Of a DNA stretch of 64,000 nucleotides, positions 3,212 through 63,890 are shown piece after piece. The notes under the pieces are model-generated. The model worked only from the letters and a program-made list of their open reading frames with translations, did not search any database and was not told the origin of the DNA. The number at the start of each line of letters is the position of its first letter. Position 1 is the first letter of the stretch. This stretch comes from Anthoceros angustus (lineage: Eukaryota; Plantae; Anthocerotophyta). The stretch spans positions 1,178,001-1,242,000 of the forward strand of contig MU008167.1 in NCBI GenBank assembly GCA_010909165.1. The letters are read 5' to 3'. A program made the position numbers and the translations under genes.

Positions 3212-4867
3212 CTAGAGAGAATAGATATCATCCACAAGCACATGAATCTTCACGCATCCAGAGTACATAGCAACGCAAGGGAACAGCTCAAACGGAAGAT
3301 CAGAGAATGCAGCGTCCTGCATCTCTACGAAACCGTCATCCACGCCCGATCTTGTGCTGAAGGTACATACTCGATCCGTCATGTTCAAATGCACCGCGAT
3401 CACGCTACCCTGTTCCTCACAGAAAGGGATTCCGCGCAAGGGCAGTGCGGGCTTACTACCACTACTACACAGGGCTTGTACAGCCGAAGTCTCATGACAC
3501 AACTCCCCGCTGCTGCGCAAACCCCATCCCCATGAGGTCTCATAAAACAACGGTCTCTCTTGCATGGGCCTCTTGTCCTTCATCCACAGCGCCTTCCGCT
3601 CATGGAATCCCACAACCAACCCATCACACGGCTCCAGCAAGATGATGGCCCACGACCAAATCCCCCTGGCTCTGTTCATCGGCCTGATGGTAGACGACGC
3701 CAGATGCGTCTTCTCCCCCCTCTGATCTCTCCAATTCAATTTCACACGAAGCACAGACCTGTCCTCCAGAACTTCCAGCTCCGGGCTCATGCATTTCTCA
3801 TCCCATGAAATCACGGCCGCCCTGTCCCCGGCATTCCACTCCGCTTGCCACCGATCATTGGCCACACCCACGCGCTCCCAGACATCCGGACACGCTTCCA
3901 GCAACGGCATCAGCAGCGTCAGCAGCAGCGTGGCATGGATGAGATCGAACCTGACCACGTCCCAGCCTTGCTCGCATCCAAATGCCAATTTCTCCACCCA
4001 GAGTTCCATGGAGGACACCGATTCCGGGTCGGGCATGAAGTTCCACATGTTGCCGCCCGTGTTGGGTTCCAGAAGCTGCGGCCACATCGATGGGAGCCTG
4101 TCTTCATCCGCCAGGCAGGCCATCATCTGCAGACCCACTTCCGAATCCATGCACCCCGACTTGCACATTGCCCAGATGAGCACATGCCGCAGCCGCAGGT
4201 ACTCCATGACGGAGTAGGCTCCTTCTCCGCTCTCAGTCCGGGTCCATGCCAGATAGACCTGGAAAGCTCTCACCGACATAGCCTGCAGATGCTGGACCTC
4301 CAACGGCCCAGCACGCATCACCATGCACATTTCCTGGATCAGCCTATGCAGCATCACATCCCTCCATGCCTCCGTGTCTGTACCTTGGCCCGGTAGCATG
4401 TTCACGTGGACTCGGAGGCACTTCAATATGTCGGCCTTCTTCAGAGAGCCCACAAGCTCACAGAAACAACTCACCGTCATCTGTAGATGCTGCACCTCCA
4501 CCTGCTCGTGCCTGTAGATGCAGAACACCTCGATCAGGGTGGAGAGCAGCTCTTTCTCCCCATCTGGCAAACCCAGAAACCGGCATATGTATAGCAGGCG
4601 GATGGCACGCCGATGTCTCATGCGCGTTTGGTCGTAATCTGGAACCTCCGTCTGGGAGTAATCACTCACTATGAGCCCACACTCGCACCTGATCCCGTGT
4701 ATCTTTTCGGACAAGGAGTCATCCAGGATTTTGCACTTTTCATAGCAGATTGTTGCCACACGGAATATCACCTCGCAGTGCCTGCAAAGATGCTTGACCT
4801 CGGGCATTTTCTCATCATCAGCCCCATCGCCAGGCGATACATCATCCTGTGGATTTTCTGCCTGCAT
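3212..4867 (-). CDS. 551-aa single-exon protein with an unknown helical N-terminal region and a C-terminal SPRY/B30.2-like domain
   Basis: Uninterrupted 551-codon ORF. The C-terminal ~200 aa carry SPRY-type motifs: WDEKCMSPELEVLED, WSWAIILLEPCDGLVVGF, GWGLRSSGELCH, GSVIAVHLNMTDRVCTFS and FSDLPFELFPCVAMY. Assigned by motif only. Confidence 0.75.
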   Translation of the reverse strand: MQAENPQDDVSPGDGADDEKMPEVKHLCRHCEVIFRVATICYEKCKILDDSLSEKIHGIRCECGLIVSDYSQTEVPDYDQTRMRHRRAIRLLYICRFLGLPDGEKELLSTLIEVFCIYRHEQVEVQHLQMTVSCFCELVGSLKKADILKCLRVHVNMLPGQGTDTEAWRDVMLHRLIQEMCMVMRAGPLEVQHLQAMSVRAFQVYLAWTRTESGEGAYSVMEYLRLRHVLIWAMCKSGCMDSEVGLQMMACLADEDRLPSMWPQLLEPNTGGNMWNFMPDPESVSSMELWVEKLAFGCEQGWDVVRFDLIHATLLLTLLMPLLEACPDVWERVGVANDRWQAEWNAGDRAAVISWDEKCMSPELEVLEDRSVLRVKLNWRDQRGEKTHLASSTIRPMNRARGIWSWAIILLEPCDGLVVGFHERKALWMKDKRPMQERPLFYETSWGWGLRSSGELCHETSAVQALCSSGSKPALPLRGIPFCEEQGSVIAVHLNMTDRVCTFSTRSGVDDGFVEMQDAAFSDLPFELFPCVAMYSGCVKIHVLVDDIYSL

Positions 4868-7077: not shown

Positions 7078-7617
7078 CATGCCATAACACATGCACCCAC
7101 TTCGCCCATGCCATAACACATGCCATAATACATGCATCCACTTTACCCATGCCATAATACATGCATCCACTCTACCCATGCCATAACACATGCAATAACA
7201 CATGCATCCACTTTACCCATGCCATAACACATGCCATAACACATGCCATAACACATGCCATAACACATGCATCCACTCTACCCATGCCATAACACATGCC
7301 ATAACTCATGCATCCACTTTATCCATGCCATAGCACATGCTATAACACATGCATCCACTCTACCCATGCCATAACACATGCCATAATACATGCATCCACT
7401 TTACCCATGTCATAACACATGCCATAACACATGCATCCACTCTACCCATGCCACAACACATGCACCCATTGTACGCATGCCATAATCCATGCCATAACAC
7501 ATGCACCCACTTTACCCATGCCATAACCCAAGCCATAACACATGCACCCACTTTACCCATGCCATAACCCAAGCCATAACACATGCACCCACTTTACCCA
7601 TGCCATAACACATGCAC
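7078..7617. repeat. Compound minisatellite built from ccataacacatg and ca(t/c)ccact(t/c)tacccatg subunits
   Basis: About 540 bp of interleaved ~12-bp and ~17-bp subunits, rich in CATG/CATGCA, ending ~690 bp upstream of the RLK start codon. Confidence 0.95.
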
Positions 7618-8308
7618 CCCGAGTCTATCCACCGAAACCACAAAGTGTGAAGCTCCACAGACTCACGAGGAATTTTTTCTCATGCTCCAGAACTTGCGCC
7701 GTTCCCAGTGCTTGCACTGCCACACCTGTGTGCTGCTCACAGGCTGGATCCTGCGAGTACACCATTTAGCACGGTACAGACTGTCGGTGCAGCACCTTCG
7801 GCTCATTTTACGGCAAGATATGTACATAGTCGGTAAGCCTTTAGATATCAGAGTGGAGTCCAGGAAGCACGGTGTGACAGCACCGCAGACACGATGGAAC
7901 TGGTACCTACCTACAGTTTACGGGCAGTAGCTTGTAAAGCGTGTTACGCATGAGCAGTGGCCAGTCCTTCTCACTCACTCGTACTGGTCTATTCTCTCTT
8001 TCCATCAAGATAGTGCACATAGTTCTAATACTCCGTTGGATTGTGGGCTTGGCGGCTTGATTCTGCTGTTGCTTATCCTTTGAAGACGGTGCTCAATCTG
8101 ATCAGTGGTCCTCTTAGACCCGCTGGCTGTGTAGGCCCCCATAGCAATTGATGGTATGTACCGGCAGCCACTTAGACGTGTGGAAGTCTCTGGCCGTTGG
8201 CCTTCGATCAGAACCTTCCCTACTGGATGTCTGCAGGATGCACCAGGCCTCAAGGCTGTAACTGCTCAATGCATTCTGGGATCCTGAGACTGCCAATTTT
8301 CATCCAGA

Positions 8309-10794
8309 ATGAAGTGTGTATGTTGGGTTATTCTGGTCTTGGCATACCAGATTATCCCACGGCCTTGGAGAATCGATGCACAGGATGTTCCGGTTCCCAC
8401 CTGCTACACTCGAGGAGCCAGGAATGCGACTTTAGATTTCTACTGGATCGCAAAAGAGGGAACCGAAGACGCCGAGTCCTACTGGGCGCCCCGTCTCCAG
8501 CTGGGTTCAGGGCCGAAAAACAACTCTCTTGTGGCTGACGACGGCTCTTTAATTGCGATGGTAGACACAGCCACAGACAGCAGGTGCCTGGACTTGGGTA
8601 CTTGCCTTCTTGATAATGGGCAACTCATCAACCTTGGCCTCACCGCTAGCACCTTCCGGATTCTGGACAAGAGAATTTTCCCATTCGGCATTGGCTCCAG
8701 AAGCAATCCTCTTGTGCCATTCGTTAGTGTGGGTAATCAGTTGCCGTTCCATACGACTCTGTGTATCAAGGAGCTGGAGAACTGGAAGCTTCCCAACAAC
8801 AAGACACATAATGGATGCGTTCGTGTAGACGACTCCAGTGGAACAGACTTGTCTGAAGCATGTCATGTCACGTTTTTTGTGCTGAAGTTTGCTTTCTTTG
8901 ATCGGATGCTGGGTGCTAACCTCCCGACAAACGTCACTGCAAGTATCTGTAGTTGCAAGATCCTGGACTACACAACCCAAGACATGTATGCGTTTGTGGA
9001 TGGTAAACTTGAAACTTATACCTTTTGCGGGCACAACCTGTTTGAGTTTGGAGAAAAGAATTTAAGGAACAGTTGTCTGTGACGGGGATCATGATTTTTG
9101 GTTGTGTGCACGTTCTTGTCTTGCAGTGAGTCCACCATCAGCTAGATCGAAAGGATCACCACACGTGATGGTGTGGGTGGGCGTTGCATTTGGTGTTCTA
9201 CTTTTGCTGGCTATGGGCTTCGTCGGATTCTATTGCCTGAAGAAGAAGTGTTGTCACGAGCAGATGGAGCACCTCTCATTGATTTCACGCCGCAGAGATG
9301 TAGAAGGTGAAAGATGAGAAGGATCTTACTTACGATCTTGAGTAACAAGAATACTTGTGCCAGTCGAATTCATCTCCAAATGGCTAACTGGCAGGAGGAT
9401 GCGTCCGTTTCCTCAGCTTACAAAGACATCGGAGCCGGCCTCCAAATGTTCTCCCTCAGCTTTATAAAGTCAGCCACAGCGAGATTTAGTGTTCGAAACA
9501 AGCTAGGCGAAGGAGGCTTTGGAGTTGTATACAAGGTGCGTAAAGTGTTCAACCTGCAGCAATGACATTGGGCTCAGGCAGCATTCCTGACAACATGTAG
9601 TGGTTGTCCTCCTACTTGGCAGGGAGTTCTGCCGGATGGGACAGAAGTGGCAGTGAAGCAAATGGCAAAAACCGGTTCCTCAAGGCAAGGAACACCCGAG
9701 TTTATGAATGAGGTGGCTCTAATCGGACAGTCACAGCATGAGAACTTGGTGAAGCTTTATGGGTACTGTCTAGAAGGTGAAGAGAGGCTGTTGGTGTACG
9801 AATTCATGGAAAAGGGCAATCTCCACCAAGCACTTTTTGGTATACATAAAAGTTATAGCTTCATTCACCGAGAAGTCGTGCAGCTGTACCTTCCCTTAGG
9901 CATGATAAGCTGAGATTTTCTTGCACCTGTAGGGAAAGACCGGCATCCGCTCTCTTGGAAGGCTCGGTACAACATCATTCTGGGAACTGCCAAAGGTCTG
10001 GCATACCTTCATCACAGCCAGAGACGGATAGTCCATCGTGATATCAAGGCCAGCAATGTGCTCCTAGACAAATATCTGCAGCCAAAAATATCTGATTTCG
10101 GTCTGGCCAAGTTCTTTGTGGAAGAGAAGAGTCATGTCAGTACTAGGGTTGCCGGCACCATGTAAGCTGCATCACTCTCAAGCATCATATGGTTACTGAA
10201 CTGGATCTGGAAAGGTCCCTTCTGACCACTTGGTGTTGGTTGATGCCATGTGCATTCAGGGGCTACCTTGCACCTGAATACGCCTTGACGGGGCAGCTCA
10301 CAGAAAAAGCAGATATCTTCAGCTTTGGAGTGCTAGTTCTGGAAGTTGTTAGTGGTCGAAGAAACATGGATTACAGAGACGCCAGAGCACCAGTGTTTCT
10401 GCTCGAATGGGTATACGTCCAGCTACAACCCAGGACCCATACATAATGCAATCAACATTCATTCCGTTGCGAAACACTAACATGTCAAGACCTGAATCTG
10501 TAGGCTTGGGACAGGTATGACGGAGGTAAACTACAGGACATCCTTGACCCCAAGATAAAGGAGGACCCTGAAGCTGTACCCGACGAAGTGTTCAAGTTGG
10601 TGCATATTGCTCTTCTTTGTGCCCAAGGGACACCCCAGAGGCGGCCCAGCATCAAAGATGTCATTTTTATGTTGGAGGGCAACACTGAGTGTACCTCAGC
10701 GCCATCCAGGCCAGAATTTCTGAGGAACACTTCTGCTATCCTACAGTCAAGTAGTTTTGTAGAAGATTGGCAGTTTTTGCAACCTCGTGAATAG
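8309..10794 (+). CDS. Receptor-like kinase: signal peptide + 3D/MltA-like ectodomain + TM + RD Ser/Thr kinase (LRR-VIII/DUF26-group kinase), 7 exons, 631 aa
   Basis: Exons 8309-9002, 9127-9299, 9395-9535, 9623-9839, 9933-10161, 10260-10410 and 10504-10794. All introns are GT..AG, phases are consistent and there is no internal stop; the intron-2 donor is the least certain. N-terminus [16 protein letters not shown]; [27 protein letters not shown] followed by KKK. Kinase motifs are intact: [58 protein letters not shown] and [20 protein letters not shown]. Confidence 0.92.
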
Positions 10795-11267
10795 GTATAG
10801 AGCGGAGTGCTAGACGGGTAAATCCTTGTCATAGTTCTTCAAAATCGACAGTCCTACAAGGTGCTGGATATGGTAAGCACATCCTTCACTGTAAACTTCA
10901 ACGGTCTCCATACACTTGCTTTTGCCAAAATGCAGAATACTTGAGATAACGTAGCAACTTCAAGTCTTGACTTGTATGCGATTCCTGCCGGCGATGAAAA
11001 GACAGGTTGATAAGTTTTGGTTGTTCCATCCAGACCTGGGTCATCGCAAGCTCTTCACACTGTTGGTGTCTTGTTCTCTATTCATTGTCTGGACCGCTGA
11101 AATGGTATGCACCAACATCCGGAACTCATGATTTCTTCTGTTCAAGTCGTAATGCCTACTAGGTTCTAGGAGCTTCAAGCAACACTAGGTTTCCAAGTCT
11201 GAAAAATTCTCCTGTAAAGAATTTATGTTGAAGTGTTCACTTCACATGCTGTATAATGTACTTCCAC

Positions 11268-11325
11268 GAAAGAAATCCATGTGGCAGCCGCCAAACTGTC
11301 GGCAATCATCCACCCGACTGCAAAA
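11268..11325 (-). pseudogene. Short antisense-oriented fragment of a 3D-like domain gene
   Basis: The minus strand reads CSRVDDCRQFGGCHMDFF, matching CVRVDDRGYFDECHIDFF of the 58.2-58.9 kb gene. It shares cgggtggatgat with the 12.04 kb copy. Flanking sequence shows no clear homology. Confidence 0.55.
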
Positions 11326-53093: not shown

Positions 53094-53594
53094 TTACATG
53101 AAGTCTCTATCTCCTTGTTCGTATCTGGCAATAACACGTTGCAACTCACGATACAAGACCGGCCCATCGAATTCATTGTTACCCTGAATTGCATTTTCTC
53201 CGTGTTGTGTAATGATTTGTACACTCCTTATATAAATTGTTATATCTAGCATTCTTCTCCTTGCTACGATATCTTGTATCATTTGATTATCATCTTGAGA
53301 TATTAAACCAACATTGTTGTCTCTTGATTGTAGATTATTATCTTGAGGTATCAAACCAACATTGTTATCTCTTGTTTGTATTGCTCGTCTACATATCGGG
53401 CAATGAATGGGCCTTGGACAACTATGCAACCATGGATCTAAACACATTTTATGAAATTCATGGGCACATAAGTCTATTTTAGTAATTTCCTCGCCCACCT
53501 CAAAAGCATGAAGGCAGATTGGGCAAACCACTTCTGGATCATCAAGTCTTCCAATTTGATAGATAGATAGGTTATAAATCAAATATGGGTCCAT
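53094..53594 (-). CDS. RING-H2 zinc-finger protein (putative E3 ligase), ~166 aa; start codon uncertain
   Basis: CPICLHAFEVGEEITKIDLCAHEFHKMCLDPWL...CPIC is a complete C3H2C3 RING-H2. It is followed by a 13-aa tandem duplication (RDNNVGLI.QD.N). The ORF extends upstream to 53780 in AT-rich sequence. No TM segment was seen. Confidence 0.7.
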   Translation of the reverse strand: MDPYLIYNLSIYQIGRLDDPEVVCPICLHAFEVGEEITKIDLCAHEFHKMCLDPWLHSCPRPIHCPICRRAIQTRDNNVGLIPQDNNLQSRDNNVGLISQDDNQMIQDIVARRRMLDITIYIRSVQIITQHGENAIQGNNEFDGPVLYRELQRVIARYEQGDRDFM

Positions 53595-53929
53595 AACTCT
53601 TAAGAATATTTTACATATGAAATAAGTATTCATAAAAGTATGAGAGTAAATAGTATAAAGATACTTATTGAGTGATCGACTTTCACAGGGAGCTGCTTTA
53701 CATATATAGACCTTCGTGAATATATATCCATACTCTATATATAGGATTAGAATTTTTTTGTTAACTCCTACACTCCTCATGAAATTAGTTCAAACTGAGC
53801 ATTTGATGAAATTAGTTCCAACTAAGCATTTGATGATACTGGCTCAACCTGAGCATTCCATGAAATAATTGGCTCAAGCTGAGCATCGGATGCATTCATA
53901 TGGCTTATGGCCTCTAACCCATCTCAAGC

Positions 53930-55345
53930 TTGACATGTCACTTTTCTTGTGCTGGAGTTTTTATTCTTCTGGAGACAAACTTCACTGCTAATATTGGGTA
54001 CTAACCTGGAGACAAACTTCACTGCTAATATCTGTAGTTGCGAGATCCTAGACTACACAACATATATGCGTTCGTGGATGATACGCTTGTAACATGTCTT
54101 CTGCAGGCACAACCTGATAGTTTGTTGCATTGAGTTTGGAGAAAAGCATTCGAACTGCAGTCTGTGACGGGGCTCATGATTTTTGGATGTGCGCACGTCC
54201 GTCGACCATGAATGAGGTGGCTCTAATCGGACAGGTCACACATGAGAACTTGGTGAAGCTTCATGGGTACTGTTTAGAAGGAGAGGAGATGCAGCTGTTG
54301 GTGTACGAATTCGTAGAGAAGGGCACTTTCCACCAGGCACTCTTTGGTATTCATGAAAGCTGGCACAAATTTGAACTATTGAAGTAATTCAACGTGATCG
54401 AATTCCAAGGACCATGACCAGGATTTATCCATCCAACACTGCCGATCTGTGCCTATTTCCGAGACTGTCGATCTTCGACAAAACGTCTGGAGTATAGGAT
54501 AGCGGGAGTTTTACTTAGAAATTCTGTCCTCGATGACACTGAGGTATACTCACTTTGGACCTGCAACATAGAAATGGCCTCTCTGATGCTGGGCCGCCTC
54601 TGGGGTGTTCCTTGGACACAAAGAGAAGCAATATGCACCAACTTCAACACCTCCTCGGGTCCAGCTTCAGGGTCCTCCTTAATCCTGGCCTGTAGTATGT
54701 CCTGTAGTTCACCGTCTTCATACCTGTAGGCTGTCCCAAGCCGATCCAGATTCAGGTCTTGTTAGTGTTTCAAAAGGGAATGACGTTGATTGCATCCTGG
54801 GTTGTAGCTGGCCGTATACCCATTCGAGCAAAAACACTGGTGCAATGGCGTTTCTGAAGTCCCTGTTTCTTCGACCACTAACAACTTCCAGAACCAGCAC
54901 TCCAAAGCTGAAGGTATCTGCTTTTTCTGTGAGCTGCCGCGCCAAAGCGTATTCAAGGTGCAAGGTAGCCCCTGAGTGCACATGGCATCAACCAACACCA
55001 ACTGGTCAGAAGGGACCTTTTCAGATCCAGATGCGATCCAGATGCAGTAACCATACGATGCTTAAAAGGGACGCATGGGTTACATGGTGCCGACAACCCT
55101 AGAGCTGACATGACTCTACCATACTTGTGTCCCCTGAATTCATCTCCAAATCGTTTACTGGCAGGAGGATGCGTCTGTTTTCTCAGCTTACGAAGACATC
55201 GGAGCTGGCCTCCAAATGTTCTCTCTCGGCGGTAGAAAGTCAACCACAGTGAGATTTGAGGTTCGAAACAAGCTGGGCGAGGGCGGCCTTGAAAATTGTC
55301 CATGAAACCTGCAGCGATAATATTGGGCTCAAGAAGCATTCCTAC
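53930..55345. pseudogene. Scrambled relic of a second 3D-ectodomain RLK
   Basis: 53930-54200 (+) holds the ectodomain end (HVTFLVLEF...SCEILDYTT) and intron 1. 54207-54355 (+) is the second half of kinase exon 4, 54400-55095 (-) is exons 5-7 and 55120-55345 (+) is the exon 3 region. Deletions and frameshifts throughout. Confidence 0.88.
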
Positions 55346-57073
55346 TCTTGAGATACCTGTTGTCTGTGCTAGGCCTCTTTGCATTGTCTCTTCCTTAGCT
55401 GGACAGTGTGAAGGAAGGATGTCAGGTAGCCAAGACAAGAGCACTACATACCGTTGTCGGTAATGGAAACAGTACAAATGACATCACTAAAGCATCTGTC
55501 AAGTAAGGTGAAACAGAGTGGTAGGTTCACTGGAACTTGCCCAAGGAACTTGCCAGAAGAAGGAATTCCTCATTTTCTAAGTCAGCCGGAACTTGGAATC
55601 ACATCTTGAGTCCTCGCCAGCCAACTACCTGTTGTCTAGACACCAACCTTTGGAAACAAAAGTCGGCTTAGCTTCATTTCGATTGTGCAAGAAACAGTAA
55701 GGCCTTGTGCCCTTTAGAACTATTTCAGGAAGGTGGGTGCCCTAGCCTAAGTAGGTCTTGGCCAGGTCTCGCAGCTGGTGTGGGAGACTGCTTGTTCTCA
55801 ACAAGGGTGGATAGCACCCTGTGTCCCTGTGACCCGGGATCATGCAGAACAATGAGATTCGGAAGAATACACGAGTTGCCAGTGCTCGCGAAGGGGAGGG
55901 GGATGGGAATACATACCGAATCAGATGAGAAGGGTACAAAGGCACAGTCAGTAGAAAGTATTACCAGCATAGCGAGACTACTCGAAATGCACCAGATCAG
56001 TCTTATTGCCTGTAGTCCGTCACACACTGGCTTGGCTTCACAAACTAGTTCAGAAGCATGTTTTCTCCTTCATCCACCACTGACAGATTCTCGCACATAG
56101 ATTGATAAGAGCCATCACACGTAAAGCGAGCTGCTGGAGTCGATGCCACCACTTCTGTTGACAGGAGCACATAGCTTCCATGCCGAAGCTCAGATCCTGA
56201 GCCAATGTGGCCGTCAGCTCCAACAAAACATCAGAAAAATCCGAAACCTTCTATGAACAGAAAAAGCTCACCAGGTGACACCTGCGACCGAATTCACAAG
56301 AATGGACTCAGTGAAAATCAAAGATGCCAACAGCTCCAGTCACCTCTCCGTGTCCGGATGAGACGCAATTTTCAGCAGAGGAATTTGAGGCTCTGTGCTT
56401 AGCTTGAATTCTGGGTTCTGCTCCTCAAATCTGAGCTCAATGCATTCTGGGTTCAAACTGTCCCAGGAACGGCTCCTCAATCGAGGAGCAAAGCCCATAA
56501 CTGCTGGAGCCAATTGTGGATCGCATAGCGGCTCAGCCGTTACAGCCTTTGAGGCCTGCCGCATCCTGCAGGCAGCCAAAAAAGGTTCTGATTCAAGGCA
56601 GACGGTCCATTGTTCATCATCTGATGCAGACCGTTCTAAGAGAGACTGCCAGAGTCCAGACCTCCACACCTCCTGAGTGGCTGTTGGTACTTTGTTGCTA
56701 TCGCTGTGGCGATGGGGACCTACAGCCCTTGCTGCAAAGTTTGCAAACACATCCGTCGGGCCTAAGAGGACCCGTGATTAAACTGAGCAATGCGCATCGT
56801 CTCCTAATAATAAGCAAGAGCAGAATCAGGCCGCCAAACCGACTTTCAAGTTTCCAAGGCAGCAATAGAACCATGTGCACTATCTTGATCTGGAACAGAG
56901 GTACATCTTCTAAGGCACCCTACATGCGAAACCCTACTGAGCTTGATCTGAGGACAGGATCAGGTAGGTATCCACATAAACATAAGCTCTGTAGACTCGA
57001 GCGTTTCATCCTAACTGTACAGAACAACTTCTTCAGTCTTGATCATTCTCTGTCGGCCAAGCAAAGATTTCAA

Positions 57074-58205: not shown

Positions 58206-58859
58206 TCAAGTGTAGGAGAGGATTTGGCAATCAGGCTTGATCACGGCATGGACTGTGTCAGGCAGAACTTGCTCCAGTGCCTTGTACTGCGCGAAGTACT
58301 TGACGAAGAAATCGATGTGGCACTCGTCGAAGTAGCCGCGATCGTCCACCCGGACGCATCCGTTGTGGACTTTCCCACTGGGAAGCCTCACGTTATGCAG
58401 CGCCTGAACGTAGAGCTTGGTGAAGGCGGGGAGATCGACGGTGGCCACGCTCACATACGGCACCAGCGCGTTCTCGAACCCGCCTTGTCCGAACGGGTAC
58501 TTCGACCTGTCAAGGATCTCGAACACGTCCGACGCGCTGCCCGCGTTGATGAGGTCCCCGTTGGTGAGAAGGCACGTTCCTTCTTCCACGCACTTGCTGT
58601 AGGTCTTGGCATCCACCCTGGCGATGGTGCTGCCGTCTTCCCCGATGATGGACTTGGTTTTGGGTCCCGTCAAGGTGATGGGTTCCCCGTCGTCGGTCTC
58701 GTCCTGGAAGCCTTCCCTGGCGATCCAGTACTGCGTGAATGTGAGGTCGCTCCGGCCGTTGTAGCAGGATGCGCTGGCTTGGGGCAGAGCTGCCAGCGTG
58801 CATAGGAAGCAAGCAGCCAGTGCAAGACACACGAGCCTGCTGCTGCTGTTGGTGGCCAT
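58206..58859 (-). CDS. Secreted 3D/MltA-like domain protein, 217 aa, intronless
   Basis: MATNSSSRLVCLALAACFLCTLAALPQASA is a signal peptide. The mature domain is homologous to the RLK ectodomain ([45 protein letters not shown]). 3D-type motifs are present: T.YW, SVATVDLPAFTKLYV and VDDRG..HIDFFV. GC-rich coding, intact ORF. Confidence 0.88.
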   Translation of the reverse strand: MATNSSSRLVCLALAACFLCTLAALPQASASCYNGRSDLTFTQYWIAREGFQDETDDGEPITLTGPKTKSIIGEDGSTIARVDAKTYSKCVEEGTCLLTNGDLINAGSASDVFEILDRSKYPFGQGGFENALVPYVSVATVDLPAFTKLYVQALHNVRLPSGKVHNGCVRVDDRGYFDECHIDFFVKYFAQYKALEQVLPDTVHAVIKPDCQILSYT

Positions 58860-59699: not shown

Positions 59700-62600
59700 G
59701 CATTACCATATCCAGCACCTTGTAGGATTGTCGACGTCCAAGGACCATGACCAGGATTTAACCATCCAGCACTCCCGATCTGTACCTATTTCCGAGATGG
59801 CAAAAACTGACAATCATCGACAAAACTACTGGCCTGTAGGATAGCAGGAGTGTTACTGAGAAATTCTGGCCTGAATGGCTCTGAGGTGCACTCACTGTGG
59901 CCCTGCAACATAGAAATGACCTCTTTGATGCTGGGCCGCCTCTGGGGTGTTCCTTGGGCACAAAGTAGAGCAATGTGCACCGACTTGAACACCTCCTCTG
60001 CTGCAGCTTCAGAGTCATCCTTGATCCTGGGGTCAAGTATGTCCTGTAGTTTACCATCTTCATTCCTGTCCCAGGCTGCAGATTCAGAACTTGTTAGTGT
60101 TTCAAAATGGACTGAACATTGCATTATTGATTGGTCCTGGGTTGTAGCTGGAAGACCCATTCCAGCAGAAACACTGGTGCCCTGGCGTCCCTGAAATCCA
60201 TGTTTCTTCGACCATTAACAACTTCCAGAACCAGCACTCCAAAGCTGAAAATATCAGCTTTTTCAAGGCGTATTCAGGTGCAAGGTACCCTTTCAGTGCA
60301 CATGGCATTAACCAACAGTACCAACTGGTCAGAAGGGACCTTTCCACATCCAGATCCAGTCACCATTTGATGTTAAAAAAGTGATGCATTGCTTACGCCG
60401 GCAAACCTAGTGCTGACATGACTCTTCTCTTCTACAAAGAACTTGGTCGGACCGAACTCAGAGATTTTTGGCTGCAAGTTTTGTCTAGGAGCACATTGCT
60501 GGCCTTGATACCACGATGGACTATCCGTCTCTTACTTTGATGAAGGTAAGCCAGACCTTTGGCAGTTCCCAGAAGCCTAAGTTGTCACACACAAGCCGCC
60601 TGGTGACGACTTGGGTGTTCCATGGTCATTGCCGGTCATTGCCCTGGTCACTCTGTGAGCCTTCACCCTTGTGCCCGTTGAATTCATCTCCACCTGGCTA
60701 ACTGGCACAAGGATGCGTCCGGTTCCTCAGCTTACAAAGGCATCGGAGCCGGCCTCCAAATGTATTCTCTCAGTGCTATAAAGTCAGCCACAGCGAGATT
60801 TGATGTTCGAAACAAGCTGGGCGAGGGAGGCTTTGGAATTGCATACGAGGTGCATAAAGTGTTCAACCTGCAGCAATGACATTGGGCTCAAGCATTCCTG
60901 ACTAGGTACATAGAGTGGTTGTACTCCTCCCTGGCAGGGAGTTTTGCAGGATGGGACAGAAGTGGCGGTGAAACATATGGCAAAGACCTCAAGTCAAGGA
61001 ACACCCGAGTTTATGAATTAGGTGGCTCTAATTGGACACTCACAGCATGAGAACTTGGTGAAGCTTTTTGTGTACTGTCTAGAAGCAGAGGAGGGGTTAT
61101 TGGTGTACGAATTCATGGAGACGGGCCACCTCCACCAAGAACTCTTTGGTATTCATGAAAGCTTTAGCTTCATTCATTGTTGCACCTGTAGAGACCGGCA
61201 TCCGCTCTCCGGAAGCCTTTCAACATCGTTCTTGAACTGCCAAAGGTCTGGCATGCCCTTCATCAAAGTCAGAGACGGATATTTCATCGTGATATCAAGG
61301 CCAGCAATGTGCTCCTAGGCCAAAAGTCTGCGACTTCGGTCTGGCCAAGTTCAGAGGAGAAGAGACATGTCAGCACTAGGGTTGCCGGCACCATGCATCA
61401 CTTTCAAGCATCAATTGGTTACTGAATCTGGATGCGGAAAGGTCCTTCTGACCAGTTAGTGTTGGTTGATGCCATGTGCACTCAGTGTTAACCAGTGTTT
61501 CTGCTCGAATGGGTATCGTCCAGCTACAACCCAGGACCAATAGATAACGCAATGTTCAGTCCCTTTGAAACACTAACAAGTCCTGATTCTGCAGGCCTGG
61601 GACAGGTATGAAGAAGGTAAACTACAGGACAGTTGACCAGGATCAAGGATTACCTTGTAGGATTGTCGACGTCCAAGGACCATGACCAGGATTTAACCAT
61701 CCAGCACTCCCGATCTGTACCTATTTCCGAGATGGCAAAACTGACAATCATCGACAAAACTACTGGCCTGTAGGATAGCAGGAGTGTTACTGAGAAATTC
61801 TGGCCTGAATGGCTCTGAGGTGCACTCACTGTGGCCCTGCAACATAGAAATGACCTCTTTGATGCTGGGCCGCCTCTGGGGTGTTCCTTGGGCACAAAGT
61901 AGAGCAATGTGCCGACTTGAACACCTCCTCTGCTGCAGCTTCAGAGTCATCCTTGATCCTGGGGTCAAGTATGTCCTGTAGTTTACCATCTTCATTCCTG
62001 TCCCAGGCTGCAGATTCAGAACTTGTTAGTGTTTCAAAATGGACTGAACATTGCATTATTGATTGGTCCTGGGTTGTAGCTGCACCAGAAGAGGTGTTCA
62101 AGTTGGTGCATATTGCTCTATTTTGTGCCCAAGGAACACCCCAGAGGCGGCCCAGCATCAAAGAGATCATTTCTATGTTGCAGGGCCACAGTGAATGTAC
62201 CTCAGTGCCATCCAGGCCAGAATGTTGAGTAACACTTCTGCTATCCTACAGTCCAGTAGCTTTGTCGAAGACTGGCAGTTTTGCCACTTCGGAAATAGGT
62301 ACAGATTGGGAGTGATTGGTGTTGACAATTCTATCCAAACTTGGGTTACGGCAACCCCTTCAAACCAAGTCTCACAGATTTTTGGCTGCAAGTTTTGTCT
62401 AGGAGCACATTGCTGGCCTTGATACCACGATGGACTATCCGTCTCTTACTTTGATGAAGGTAAGCCAGACCTTTGGCAGTTCCCAGAAGCCTAAGTTGTC
62501 ACACACAAGCCGCCTGGTGACGACTTGGGTGTTCCATGGTCATTGCCGGTCATTGCCCTGGTCACTCTGTGAGCCTTCACCCTTGTGCCCGTTGAATTCA

Positions 62601-63890
62601 TCTCCACCTGGCTAACTGGCACAAGGATGCGTCCGGTTCCTCAGCTTACAAAGGCATCGGAGCCGGCCTCCAAATGTATTCTCTCAGTGCTATAAAGTCA
62701 GCCACAGCGAGATTTGATGTTCGAAACAAGCTGGGCGAGGGAGGCTTTGGAATTGCATACGAGGTGCATAAAGTGTTCAACCTGCAGCAATGACATTGGG
62801 CTCATGAAGCATTCCTGACTAGGTACATAGAGTGGTTGTACTCCTCCCTGGCAGGGAGTTTTGCAGGATGGGACAGAAGTGGCGGTGAAACATATGGCAA
62901 AGACCTCAAGTCAAGGAACACCCGAGTTTATGAATTAGGTGGCTCTAATTGGACACTCACAGCATGAGAACTTGGTGAAGCTTTTTGTGTACTGTCTAGA
63001 AGCAGAGGAGGGGTTATTGGTGTACGAATTCATGGAGACGGGCCACCTCCACCAAGAACTCTTTGGTATTCATGAAAGCTTTAGCTTCATTCATTGTTGC
63101 ACCTGTAGAGAGACCGGCATCCGCTCTCCTGGAAGCCTCGGTTCAACATCGTTCTTGGAACTGCCAAAGGTCTGGCATGCCCTTCATCAAAGTCAGAGAC
63201 GGATATTTCATCGTGATATCAAGGCCAGCAATGTGCTCCTAGGCCAAAAGTCTGCGACTTCGGTCTGGCCAAGTTCAGAGGAGAAGAGACATGTCAGCAC
63301 TAGGGTTGCCGGCACCATGCATCACTTTCAAGCATCAATTGGTTACTGAATCTGGATGCGGAAAGGTCCCTTCTGACCAGTTAGTGTTGGTTGATGCCAT
63401 GTGCACTCAGTGTTAACCAGTGTTTCTGCTCGAATGGGTATCGTCCAGCTACAACCCAGGACCAATAGATAACGCAATGTTCAGTCCCTTTTGAAACACT
63501 AACAAGTCCTGATTCTGCAGGCCTGGGACAGGTATGAAGAAGGTAAACTACAGGACAGTTGACCCAGGATCAAGGATTACCTTGTAGCTGCACCAGAAGA
63601 GGTGTTCAAGTTGGTGCATATTGCTCTATTTTGTGCCCAAGGAACACCCCAGAGGCGGCCCAGCATCAAAGAGATCATTTCTATGTTGCAGGGCCACAGT
63701 GAATGTACCTCAGTGCCATCCAGGCCAGAATGTTGAGTAACACTTCTGCTATCCTACAGTCCAGTAGCTTTGTCGAAGACTGGCAGTTTTTGCCACTTCG
63801 GAAATAGGTACAGATTGGGAGTGATTGGTGTTGACAATTCTATCCAAACTTGGGTTACGGCAACCCCTTCAAACCAAGTCTCACAGATGG
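59700..63890. pseudogene. Mosaic of RLK kinase pseudogene blocks in both orientations
   Basis: 59700-60578 (-) holds exons 5-7 and 60660-61655 (+) exons 3-7, with an in-frame TAG at ~61020 and frameshifts. 61656-62081 repeats 59720-60150. 62376-63583 repeats 60453-61655 and 63584-63888 repeats 62077-62385. Confidence 0.9.

Follow-up and report, generated by a model that had tools for sequence, protein, structure and literature searches.

A stretch of 64,000 nucleotides from the hornwort Anthoceros angustus (assembly GCA_010909165.1, contig MU008167.1, positions 1,178,001 to 1,242,000), referred to below as the window, contains two intact genes with the same MltA/3D-like fold: a gene for a small secreted protein (58209-58859, minus strand) and a receptor kinase gene (8309-10794, plus strand) in which this fold forms the ectodomain. 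The best explanation, to which a probability of about 0.6 is assigned, is that an enzyme of fungal origin has been duplicated, the secreted copy being active and the receptor copy being a non-catalytic, glycan-binding sensor. What has been shown is the homology and the fold, which residues correspond in profile alignments, which of them are lost, the presence of the kinase fusion in two samples of plants and the splicing of relatives' transcripts. That the free copy is an active enzyme and that the receptor binds a glycan is inferred, as would be any functional link between the two.

The fold of both proteins has been analyzed with AlphaFold (AF2) models built on a 117-sequence alignment, the secreted protein reaching a predicted local distance difference test (pLDDT) value of 97.6 and the receptor ectodomain (exon 1) one of 94.9. 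Both models possess a double-psi beta-barrel (DPBB) with an inserted second lobe as in MltA. The top 14 Foldseek matches of the secreted model in the PDB all belong to the MltA family (E 7e-5), and in VIA-align MltA chains are the best matches of both models (Z about 9.3-11 over 155-165 residues); the fold is shared with MltA (PDB 2ae0, 2pi8) over both lobes. With YuiC (PDB 4wjt) the secreted model shares the fold over the core (Z 8.1, root-mean-square deviation 2.2 Å). The barrel core is also common to plant DPBB proteins (expansins, kiwellins, barwin, cerato-platanin-like proteins); however, these lack the second lobe and cover half of the window models, expansin, kiwellin, barwin and GH45 aligning to the barrel half alone (Z 5-7.6, about 85-95 residues), and the MltA matches are clearly higher. 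With exon 1 as query, phmmer returned 194 matches from the whole representative library, among them bacterial proteins that pass Pfam 3D (PF06725) over the aligned stretch. The secreted protein found no match by phmmer among PDB sequences, and the family profile gave only a weak PDB match, to YuiC (E 0.25). Membership in the MltA/3D-domain family, as far as sequence comparison goes, is therefore reached indirectly, through phmmer to PF06725-bearing bacterial proteins and through hhalign to MltA. The preliminary description of this DNA had called the domain MltA/3D-like, which is upheld by the Foldseek ranking, by MltA Z scores of 10-11 and by the PF06725-bearing bacterial relatives.

The residues involved in catalysis have been described by Quay et al., who superposed YuiC on MltA (PMC4499186): (i) D162 of YuiC corresponds to D308 of MltA, the catalytic carboxylate; (ii) T91 of YuiC corresponds to T99 of MltA, which orients the catalytic Asp and is in contact with it; (iii) D151 of YuiC corresponds to D297 of MltA, which binds the N-acetyl nitrogen of the -2 sugar. 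The family alignment was compared by hhalign with E. coli MltA, whose sequence was taken from NC_000913.3 (E 6.5e-5 in default mode, 3e-5 in a greedier mode). This alignment pairs H-I-D-F-F of the family with H-F-D308-I-Y, and the second Asp of V-D-D with D297; in the profile match to YuiC, these two Asp residues fall on D151 and D162. Within what profile comparison and the matched fold ranges can tell, the equivalence of the HID Asp to MltA D308 that the preliminary description had proposed holds. A second difference pointed out there, ATVD in the secreted form against VGNQ in the receptor, is present in the alignment, at a weakly diagnostic column (Asp in 116 of 186 sequences; MltA D261 aligns one residue off).

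The D…G…H-x-D motif is shared by the family with MltA and YuiC. The secreted protein retains T42, E93, T95, D173, H181 and D183, thereby both the catalytic Asp (D183) and the orienting Thr (T42) as well as the equivalent of D297. Since all catalytic and subsite residues are kept, the secreted copy is probably still an enzyme, and MltA/YuiC-like cleavage of a beta-1,4 N-acetylglucosamine (GlcNAc) glycan would be its likeliest activity. Its predicted substrate is probably a GlcNAc-containing beta-1,4 glycan such as chitin or peptidoglycan, to which both the accessory domains of homologues (LysM, NodB deacetylase, CBM2 or SH3b) and the cleavage of penta-N-acetylglucosamine (penta-NAG) by YuiC (PMC4499186) point.

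In contrast to the secreted copy and to MltA and YuiC, the receptor ectodomain lacks the equivalents of D308 and T99: the former site is occupied by T188 and the latter by D43. Its fold and its cysteines are retained, as are about 25 of the 30 best-conserved columns and the equivalents of D297 and T/S164. The enzyme fold and the ligand-contact residues are thus kept and the catalytic residues lost, and such retention of fold, cysteines and -2 subsite Asp with loss of the catalytic set is the pattern expected for a binding-only pseudo-enzyme. Judged from these residues, the ectodomain is most likely a non-catalytic glycan-binding sensor, i.e. a pseudo-enzyme receptor.

The distribution of these sites among homologues was surveyed in the 117 aligned sequences. 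Asp occupies the D308 site in 112 of them (165 of about 174 in a wider set), and the contrast between the secreted and the receptor motifs goes beyond chance. The D297 site is Asp in 115, and 108 sequences keep all three of Thr/Ser at the T99 site, Glu/Asp/Gln at the E-G-T site and Asp at the D308 site. All three sites are lost in only two sequences, both of them kinase-fused: the window ectodomain (D/L/T) and a second ectodomain, P0021 (M/I/A), and both keep the sugar-binding Asp at the D297 site. P0021 reads C-A-I-A-L-F, the His being lost as well. The Glu site is occupied by L in the window receptor, by V in a close relative (8594 T>G) and by I in L001, the contig of P0021. In this contig the ectodomain exon, the transmembrane exon and the kinase exons are in frame, and the plant-like sample from which it comes (Logan SRR33208241) contains three free copies in addition to this kinase fusion, thus the entire set. 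Kinase-fused homologues that commonly keep the Asp had been named beforehand as evidence against a pseudo-enzyme receptor; the only other fusion found, P0021, also lacks it. No further kinase fusion came from a word search with P0021, which returned P0021 itself alone, or from the whole-library search, so that the survey of fusions rests on two sister sequences. Among the longer matches listed, P0074, P0167, P0156, P0112, P0141, P0154, P0045, P0050 and P0145 were considered as fusions and rejected, the kinase motif being absent; the longer homologues checked for a kinase pair the domain with deacetylase, SH3b, epidermal growth factor (EGF) or multi-pass membrane parts.

The receptor kinase gene consists of seven exons and encodes an RD kinase with VAVK, HRD, DFG and APE motifs. 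Its exon translation contains all features of the RLK/Pelle type, namely a signal peptide, one transmembrane helix and the kinase catalytic motifs; Pfam Pkinase and PK_Tyr_Ser-Thr match exons 4-6, the exons being searched singly. The receptor was searched and folded exon by exon, and the joined protein served to verify reading frames and to locate paralogous pieces inside the window. Splicing was read from contigs of public sequencing runs, which represent relatives or paralogues about 91% identical in exon 1 and not the source genome; the runs contain about 14% of the window's words. Spliced contigs of relatives are abundant, show the exon 1 donor site at 9003 and confirm six introns, the acceptor of intron 2 being questionable. 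In a comparison of exon 1 with a relative's transcript over codons 2-117, 14 of the 27 changed codons were synonymous and 13 non-synonymous, which suggests moderate purifying selection on this part of the receptor gene.

The closest relatives of the secreted protein occur in Mucoromycota (Endogone, Mucor, Parasitella, Jimgerdemannia; 45-55% identity), some of them being called "3D domain-containing" in UniRef. In the tree, the six plant rows fall together in a single, weakly supported clade adjoining Endogonales, within which the free plant copies cluster together (90). The two fused ectodomains, 47% identical to each other, are sisters (98 in the Shimodaira-Hasegawa-like approximate likelihood ratio test, SH-aLRT) on long branches (0.52 for the stem, 0.59 and 0.93 for the tips; the median is 0.36). 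This pattern fits one transfer, then duplication and one fusion event, with later drift of the catalytic sites. The C-terminal tail of exon 1 is of fungal type and the secreted copy has no such tail, which indicates that the fusion is not descended from the present secreted gene.

The most probable course of events would begin in Mucoromycota fungi, with Endogonales as nearest relatives, from which a gene without introns, encoding a small secreted enzyme of MltA/3D fold and lytic-transglycosylase type, passed to the plant lineage. The gene would then have been duplicated within the plant, and one copy taken up in its entirety to become the first exon of an RD-type receptor kinase with a transmembrane helix. 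The captured ectodomain would have kept the fold, the cysteines and the D297-equivalent Asp, and the D308-equivalent Asp, the T99-equivalent Thr and the conserved Glu would have been replaced.

The window itself is plant-like eukaryotic DNA; its introns are of the GT-AG type and its kinases of the RLK/Pelle type. All five motif strings listed in the preliminary description were recovered at their places with a six-frame motif scan (Table 1). Its plural "secreted copies" and "receptor copies" did not hold, however, as only the secreted gene and the receptor kinase are intact and the other three copies are dead fragments. The secreted-type pseudogene next to the receptor has lost about 372 nt internally after SCYNG, with a shift of the frame, and the second receptor-type remnant has a stop codon immediately 5' of the His codon and scrambled kinase pieces downstream. 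Comparison at the DNA level revealed two old duplicates, 72-80% identical, of a receptor and secreted-type gene pair. The unit at 8.3-12.2 kb contains the intact receptor kinase and a secreted-type remnant, and the unit at 53.9-58.9 kb a receptor remnant and the intact secreted gene. The decay of the two units is reciprocal: the receptor survives in one and the secreted gene in the other.

Table 1. Features of the window and of related loci; positions are those of the window unless a contig is named.
Feature	Position	Strand	Remarks
Receptor exon 1	8309..9002	+	signal peptide and entire MltA/3D-like ectodomain; domain intron-free
Asp43 codon GAT in T-L-D-F-Y-W	8435..8437	+	conserved Thr site of the family; aligned with MltA T99
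Leu96 codon TTG	8594..8596	+	conserved Glu of the E-G-T motif; Val in relative's transcript
Asp175 codon, second Asp of V-D-D	8831..8833	+	aligned with MltA D297
HVTFF	8864-8878	+	read as CHVTFFV; six-frame scan
Thr188 codon ACG in C-H-V-T-F-F	8870..8872	+	MltA D308 / YuiC D162 site
Receptor exon 2	9127..9306	+	transmembrane helix and juxtamembrane stretch; junctions in spliced contigs
Receptor exon 3	9395..9535	+	kinase start, GEGGFG loop
Receptor exons 4-7	9623-9839, 9933-10161, 10260-10410, 10504-10794	+	kinase domain and C-terminal tail
Secreted-type short fragment	11240..11320	-	about 25 residues (…RVDDCRQFGGCHMDFF…), stop codons on flanks
HMDFF	11269-11283	-	six-frame scan
Secreted-type pseudogene	11930..12175	+	signal peptide and SCYNG joined to last ~55 codons with CHIDLF
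HIDLF	12068-12082	+	six-frame scan
Second receptor-type ectodomain remnant	53922..54062	+	last ~47 residues, HVTFLV
HVTFL	53934-53948	+	six-frame scan
Kinase fragments of second receptor copy, rearranged	54199..55343	both orientations	
Secreted MltA/3D-like gene, intact, intronless	58209..58859	-	217 amino acids with signal peptide
HIDFF	58305-58319	-	six-frame scan
Asp183 codon of C-H-I-D-F-F	58311..58313	-	aligned with MltA D308 (hhalign)
Scrambled kinase fragments, same kinase type, partly duplicated	59703..63814	both orientations	no ectodomain exon
P0021	L001 130-903		exon 1 of second receptor kinase; 4.5-kb contig, Logan SRR33208241
P0025	L005 3808-4587		free copy, Asp kept
P0030	L006 2809-3501		free copy, Asp kept
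P0043	L004 5001-5612		free copy; catalytic Asp to Arg, Thr to His
P0150	L002 5001-5786, GCA_027576995.1		free fungal homologue, Thr at catalytic Asp site

Several further elements accompany these genes. The promoter region of the receptor gene (8004-8266) is found again, inverted, at 56535-56889, and a little way upstream of this gene there is a minisatellite with a 41-bp unit (7078-7615; about 14 copies, 75% match). Copia elements sit between the two duplicate units; Ty1/copia remains at 13.5-20.1 kb (minus strand) contain RVT_2, Pol beta-barrel and GAG-pre-integrase domains and are apparently nested or duplicated. Beside the decayed receptor copy there is a RING-H2 open reading frame of 228 amino acids (53094-53780, minus strand; zf-RING_2, E 1.9e-9). 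The kinase array at 59703-63814 includes two near-identical blocks, at about 60.6-61.5 kb and 62.5-63.4 kb. An open reading frame of 551 amino acids at 3212-4867 (minus strand) has no Pfam match.

Compared to MltA, of about 335 residues, the secreted protein is short (187 mature residues), eukaryotic and cysteine-rich. A number of observations weigh against the interpretation as an active enzyme and a pseudo-enzyme sensor. Neither the secreted protein nor the receptor exon is matched by Pfam 3D (PF06725) or MltA (PF03562), at E up to 10 for the former and up to 1 for the latter. The residue equivalence rests on profile alignment and a published superposition, and the N-terminal part of the hhalign alignment, which pairs F-T-Q-Y-W with F-T99-G-Y-Y and E-G-T with Q-G-S164, is of low confidence. 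The two fusions, being sisters, count as one evolutionary event, and the catalytic loss may have been single. The free copies P0043, P0150, P0078 and P0090 also lack the Asp. It had been claimed beforehand that the Asp or Thr state follows the architecture; this stood for both fusions, which lack the Asp, and failed for the free plant copy P0043 and the fungal P0150, which lack it too. In the assembled genome no kinase gene is called within 5 kb on either side of P0150, and its Thr at the catalytic site indicates that pseudo-enzyme forms arise outside receptor fusions as well. The locus is also crowded with decayed copies. Finally, the dominant contigs of the relatives splice 9306 to 9395 (acceptor 9394), which leaves the kinase out of frame, and in the window sequence this join leads to a stop after 322 amino acids, the product being an ectodomain with a membrane anchor and a short tail and no kinase. 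An acceptor at 9416, 22 nt downstream of 9394 and homologous to that of L001, gives an in-frame product of 626 amino acids; an alternative donor at 9300 (instead of 9307) is likewise in frame, and a 1-nt deletion at 9413 in minor contigs would restore the frame. The out-of-frame join together with these in-frame alternatives suggests that the receptor gene may give rise to a complete receptor kinase as well as to a form lacking the kinase.

In an alternative view, a turbulent gene cluster has thrown up the fusion as a neutral or decaying by-product, which lost its catalytic residues through relaxed constraint and senses nothing. Three of the five copies are dead, with kinase debris at 54-55.5 kb and 59.7-63.8 kb; to this may be added the out-of-frame dominant splice form of the relatives, the long branches in the fusion clade and the different replacements at the three lost sites in the two lineages. 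However, the fusion retains open frames in both samples at an ectodomain identity of only 47%, the ectodomain is still predicted with a pLDDT of 94.9, its cysteines are in place, as are about 25 of the 30 best-conserved columns, synonymous changes exceed the neutral expectation, and the transcripts of relatives are abundant and spliced, with the 9416 acceptor available in frame as in L001. Such a by-product is regarded as distinctly unlikely. The exchange of places between Thr and Asp in the window receptor (D43 and T188; T12 to D and D153 to T in mature secreted numbering) speaks against the pseudo-enzyme interpretation in another way: T-L-D-F-Y-W and C-H-V-T-F-F stand where the family has Thr and Asp, and the two equivalent residues touch each other in MltA and YuiC (PMC4499186), so that a relocated carboxylate, and with it a receptor ectodomain that is still catalytic, is conceivable. 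Nevertheless, the sister fusion has Met and Ala at the two sites and no carboxylate at either, and the conserved Glu is lost too (L here, V in the relative, I in L001). To our knowledge, a working Thr-Asp swap has not been described in the MltA/3D family, and retained catalysis is considered highly improbable.

A more ambitious proposal is that the secreted paralogue and the receptor constitute a dedicated module, the enzyme freeing fragments of fungal chitin or of cyanobiont or bacterial peptidoglycan and the dead-enzyme receptor perceiving the products. The two gene types do stand together and have been duplicated as a unit (8.3-12.2 kb and 53.9-58.9 kb), the receptor retains the -2 subsite Asp, and the accessory domains of the family point to GlcNAc polymers. 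The adjacency is, however, equally explained by an origin through local duplication, and the survival of a single partner per unit is a misfit with an obligate pair in cis. The ectodomain clade is moreover old and diverged (46-47% identity to the secreted copy), so that ligand specificity may have shifted, and the link between enzyme and receptor is drawn from sequence. A module of this kind appears unlikely. The full account, by which an enzyme acquired from symbiotic fungi was duplicated in hornworts and the dead receptor detects the fragments freed by its active secreted sister, is quite doubtful; under it the ligands might be oligomers of chitin or peptidoglycan that possibly bear anhydro ends, and fungal or cyanobacterial partners could be sensed by a self-contained system of horizontal origin. 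The earlier proposal of an enzyme with a pseudo-enzyme sensor stands in its pseudo-enzyme part, which is well supported by fold, residue equivalence and survey, and the "release and perceive" pairing remains conjectural.

The logic of such a pairing has a counterpart in Arabidopsis, where the secreted enzyme LYS1 frees GlcNAc fragments that are detected at the cell surface by the receptor LYM1/LYM3-CERK1. Enzyme and receptor are unrelated in the LYS1 system, one of hydrolases and LysM receptor kinases, whereas the window pair would be paralogues. The ectodomain of the tobacco receptor kinase CHRK1 lacks the catalytic Glu and is not known to have chitinase activity. This ectodomain has a GH18 chitinase-like fold (PMC5485988), so that CHRK1 and other GH18 receptor kinases resemble the window receptor in using the fold of a carbohydrate enzyme as ectodomain. 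There are major differences between them: CHRK1 carries a GH18 TIM barrel of native plant origin and is found in seed plants, and the window receptor carries a DPBB/MltA fold that would have come by horizontal transfer.

The transfer of "3D domain proteins" from fungi to hornworts has been published by Zhang et al. 2020 (PMC7027989, Supplementary Fig. 84), where the Anthoceros angustus 3D-domain genes AANG010888 and AANG004622 group with Mucoromycota; the window proteins are placed likewise here. Kinase fusion and loss of catalytic residues, as seen in the window receptor, are not mentioned in the text of that paper examined here. The 2020 genome paper on Anthoceros agrestis and Anthoceros punctatus does not discuss transfers. 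Searches of the bryophyte receptor kinase literature found nothing on an MltA-type or horizontally acquired receptor-kinase ectodomain or on its catalytic loss; "metaRLK 2.0" was set aside as a 3D-domain source, as "3D domain" there means three-dimensional. The fungus-to-hornwort transfer and enzyme-fold ectodomains (GH18) are thus already known, and a description of the kinase fusion was not found.

Enzyme-derived ectodomains are known on plant receptor kinases, and the window receptor would add one of MltA-type fold and horizontal origin, neither of which was found described. Both proteins are small and predicted with high confidence, and the contrast at issue reduces to three residues, so the pseudo-enzyme reading is directly testable. 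Should fragments of chitin or peptidoglycan be bound by the ectodomain, this would represent a second independent route, besides LysM, for the sensing of GlcNAc polymers in a land plant, in a hornwort lineage that lives with both Mucoromycotina fungi and cyanobacteria. The pair would then also be a clean natural case of an enzyme becoming a receptor, since the paralogue that is probably still active lies close by and can be compared with it.

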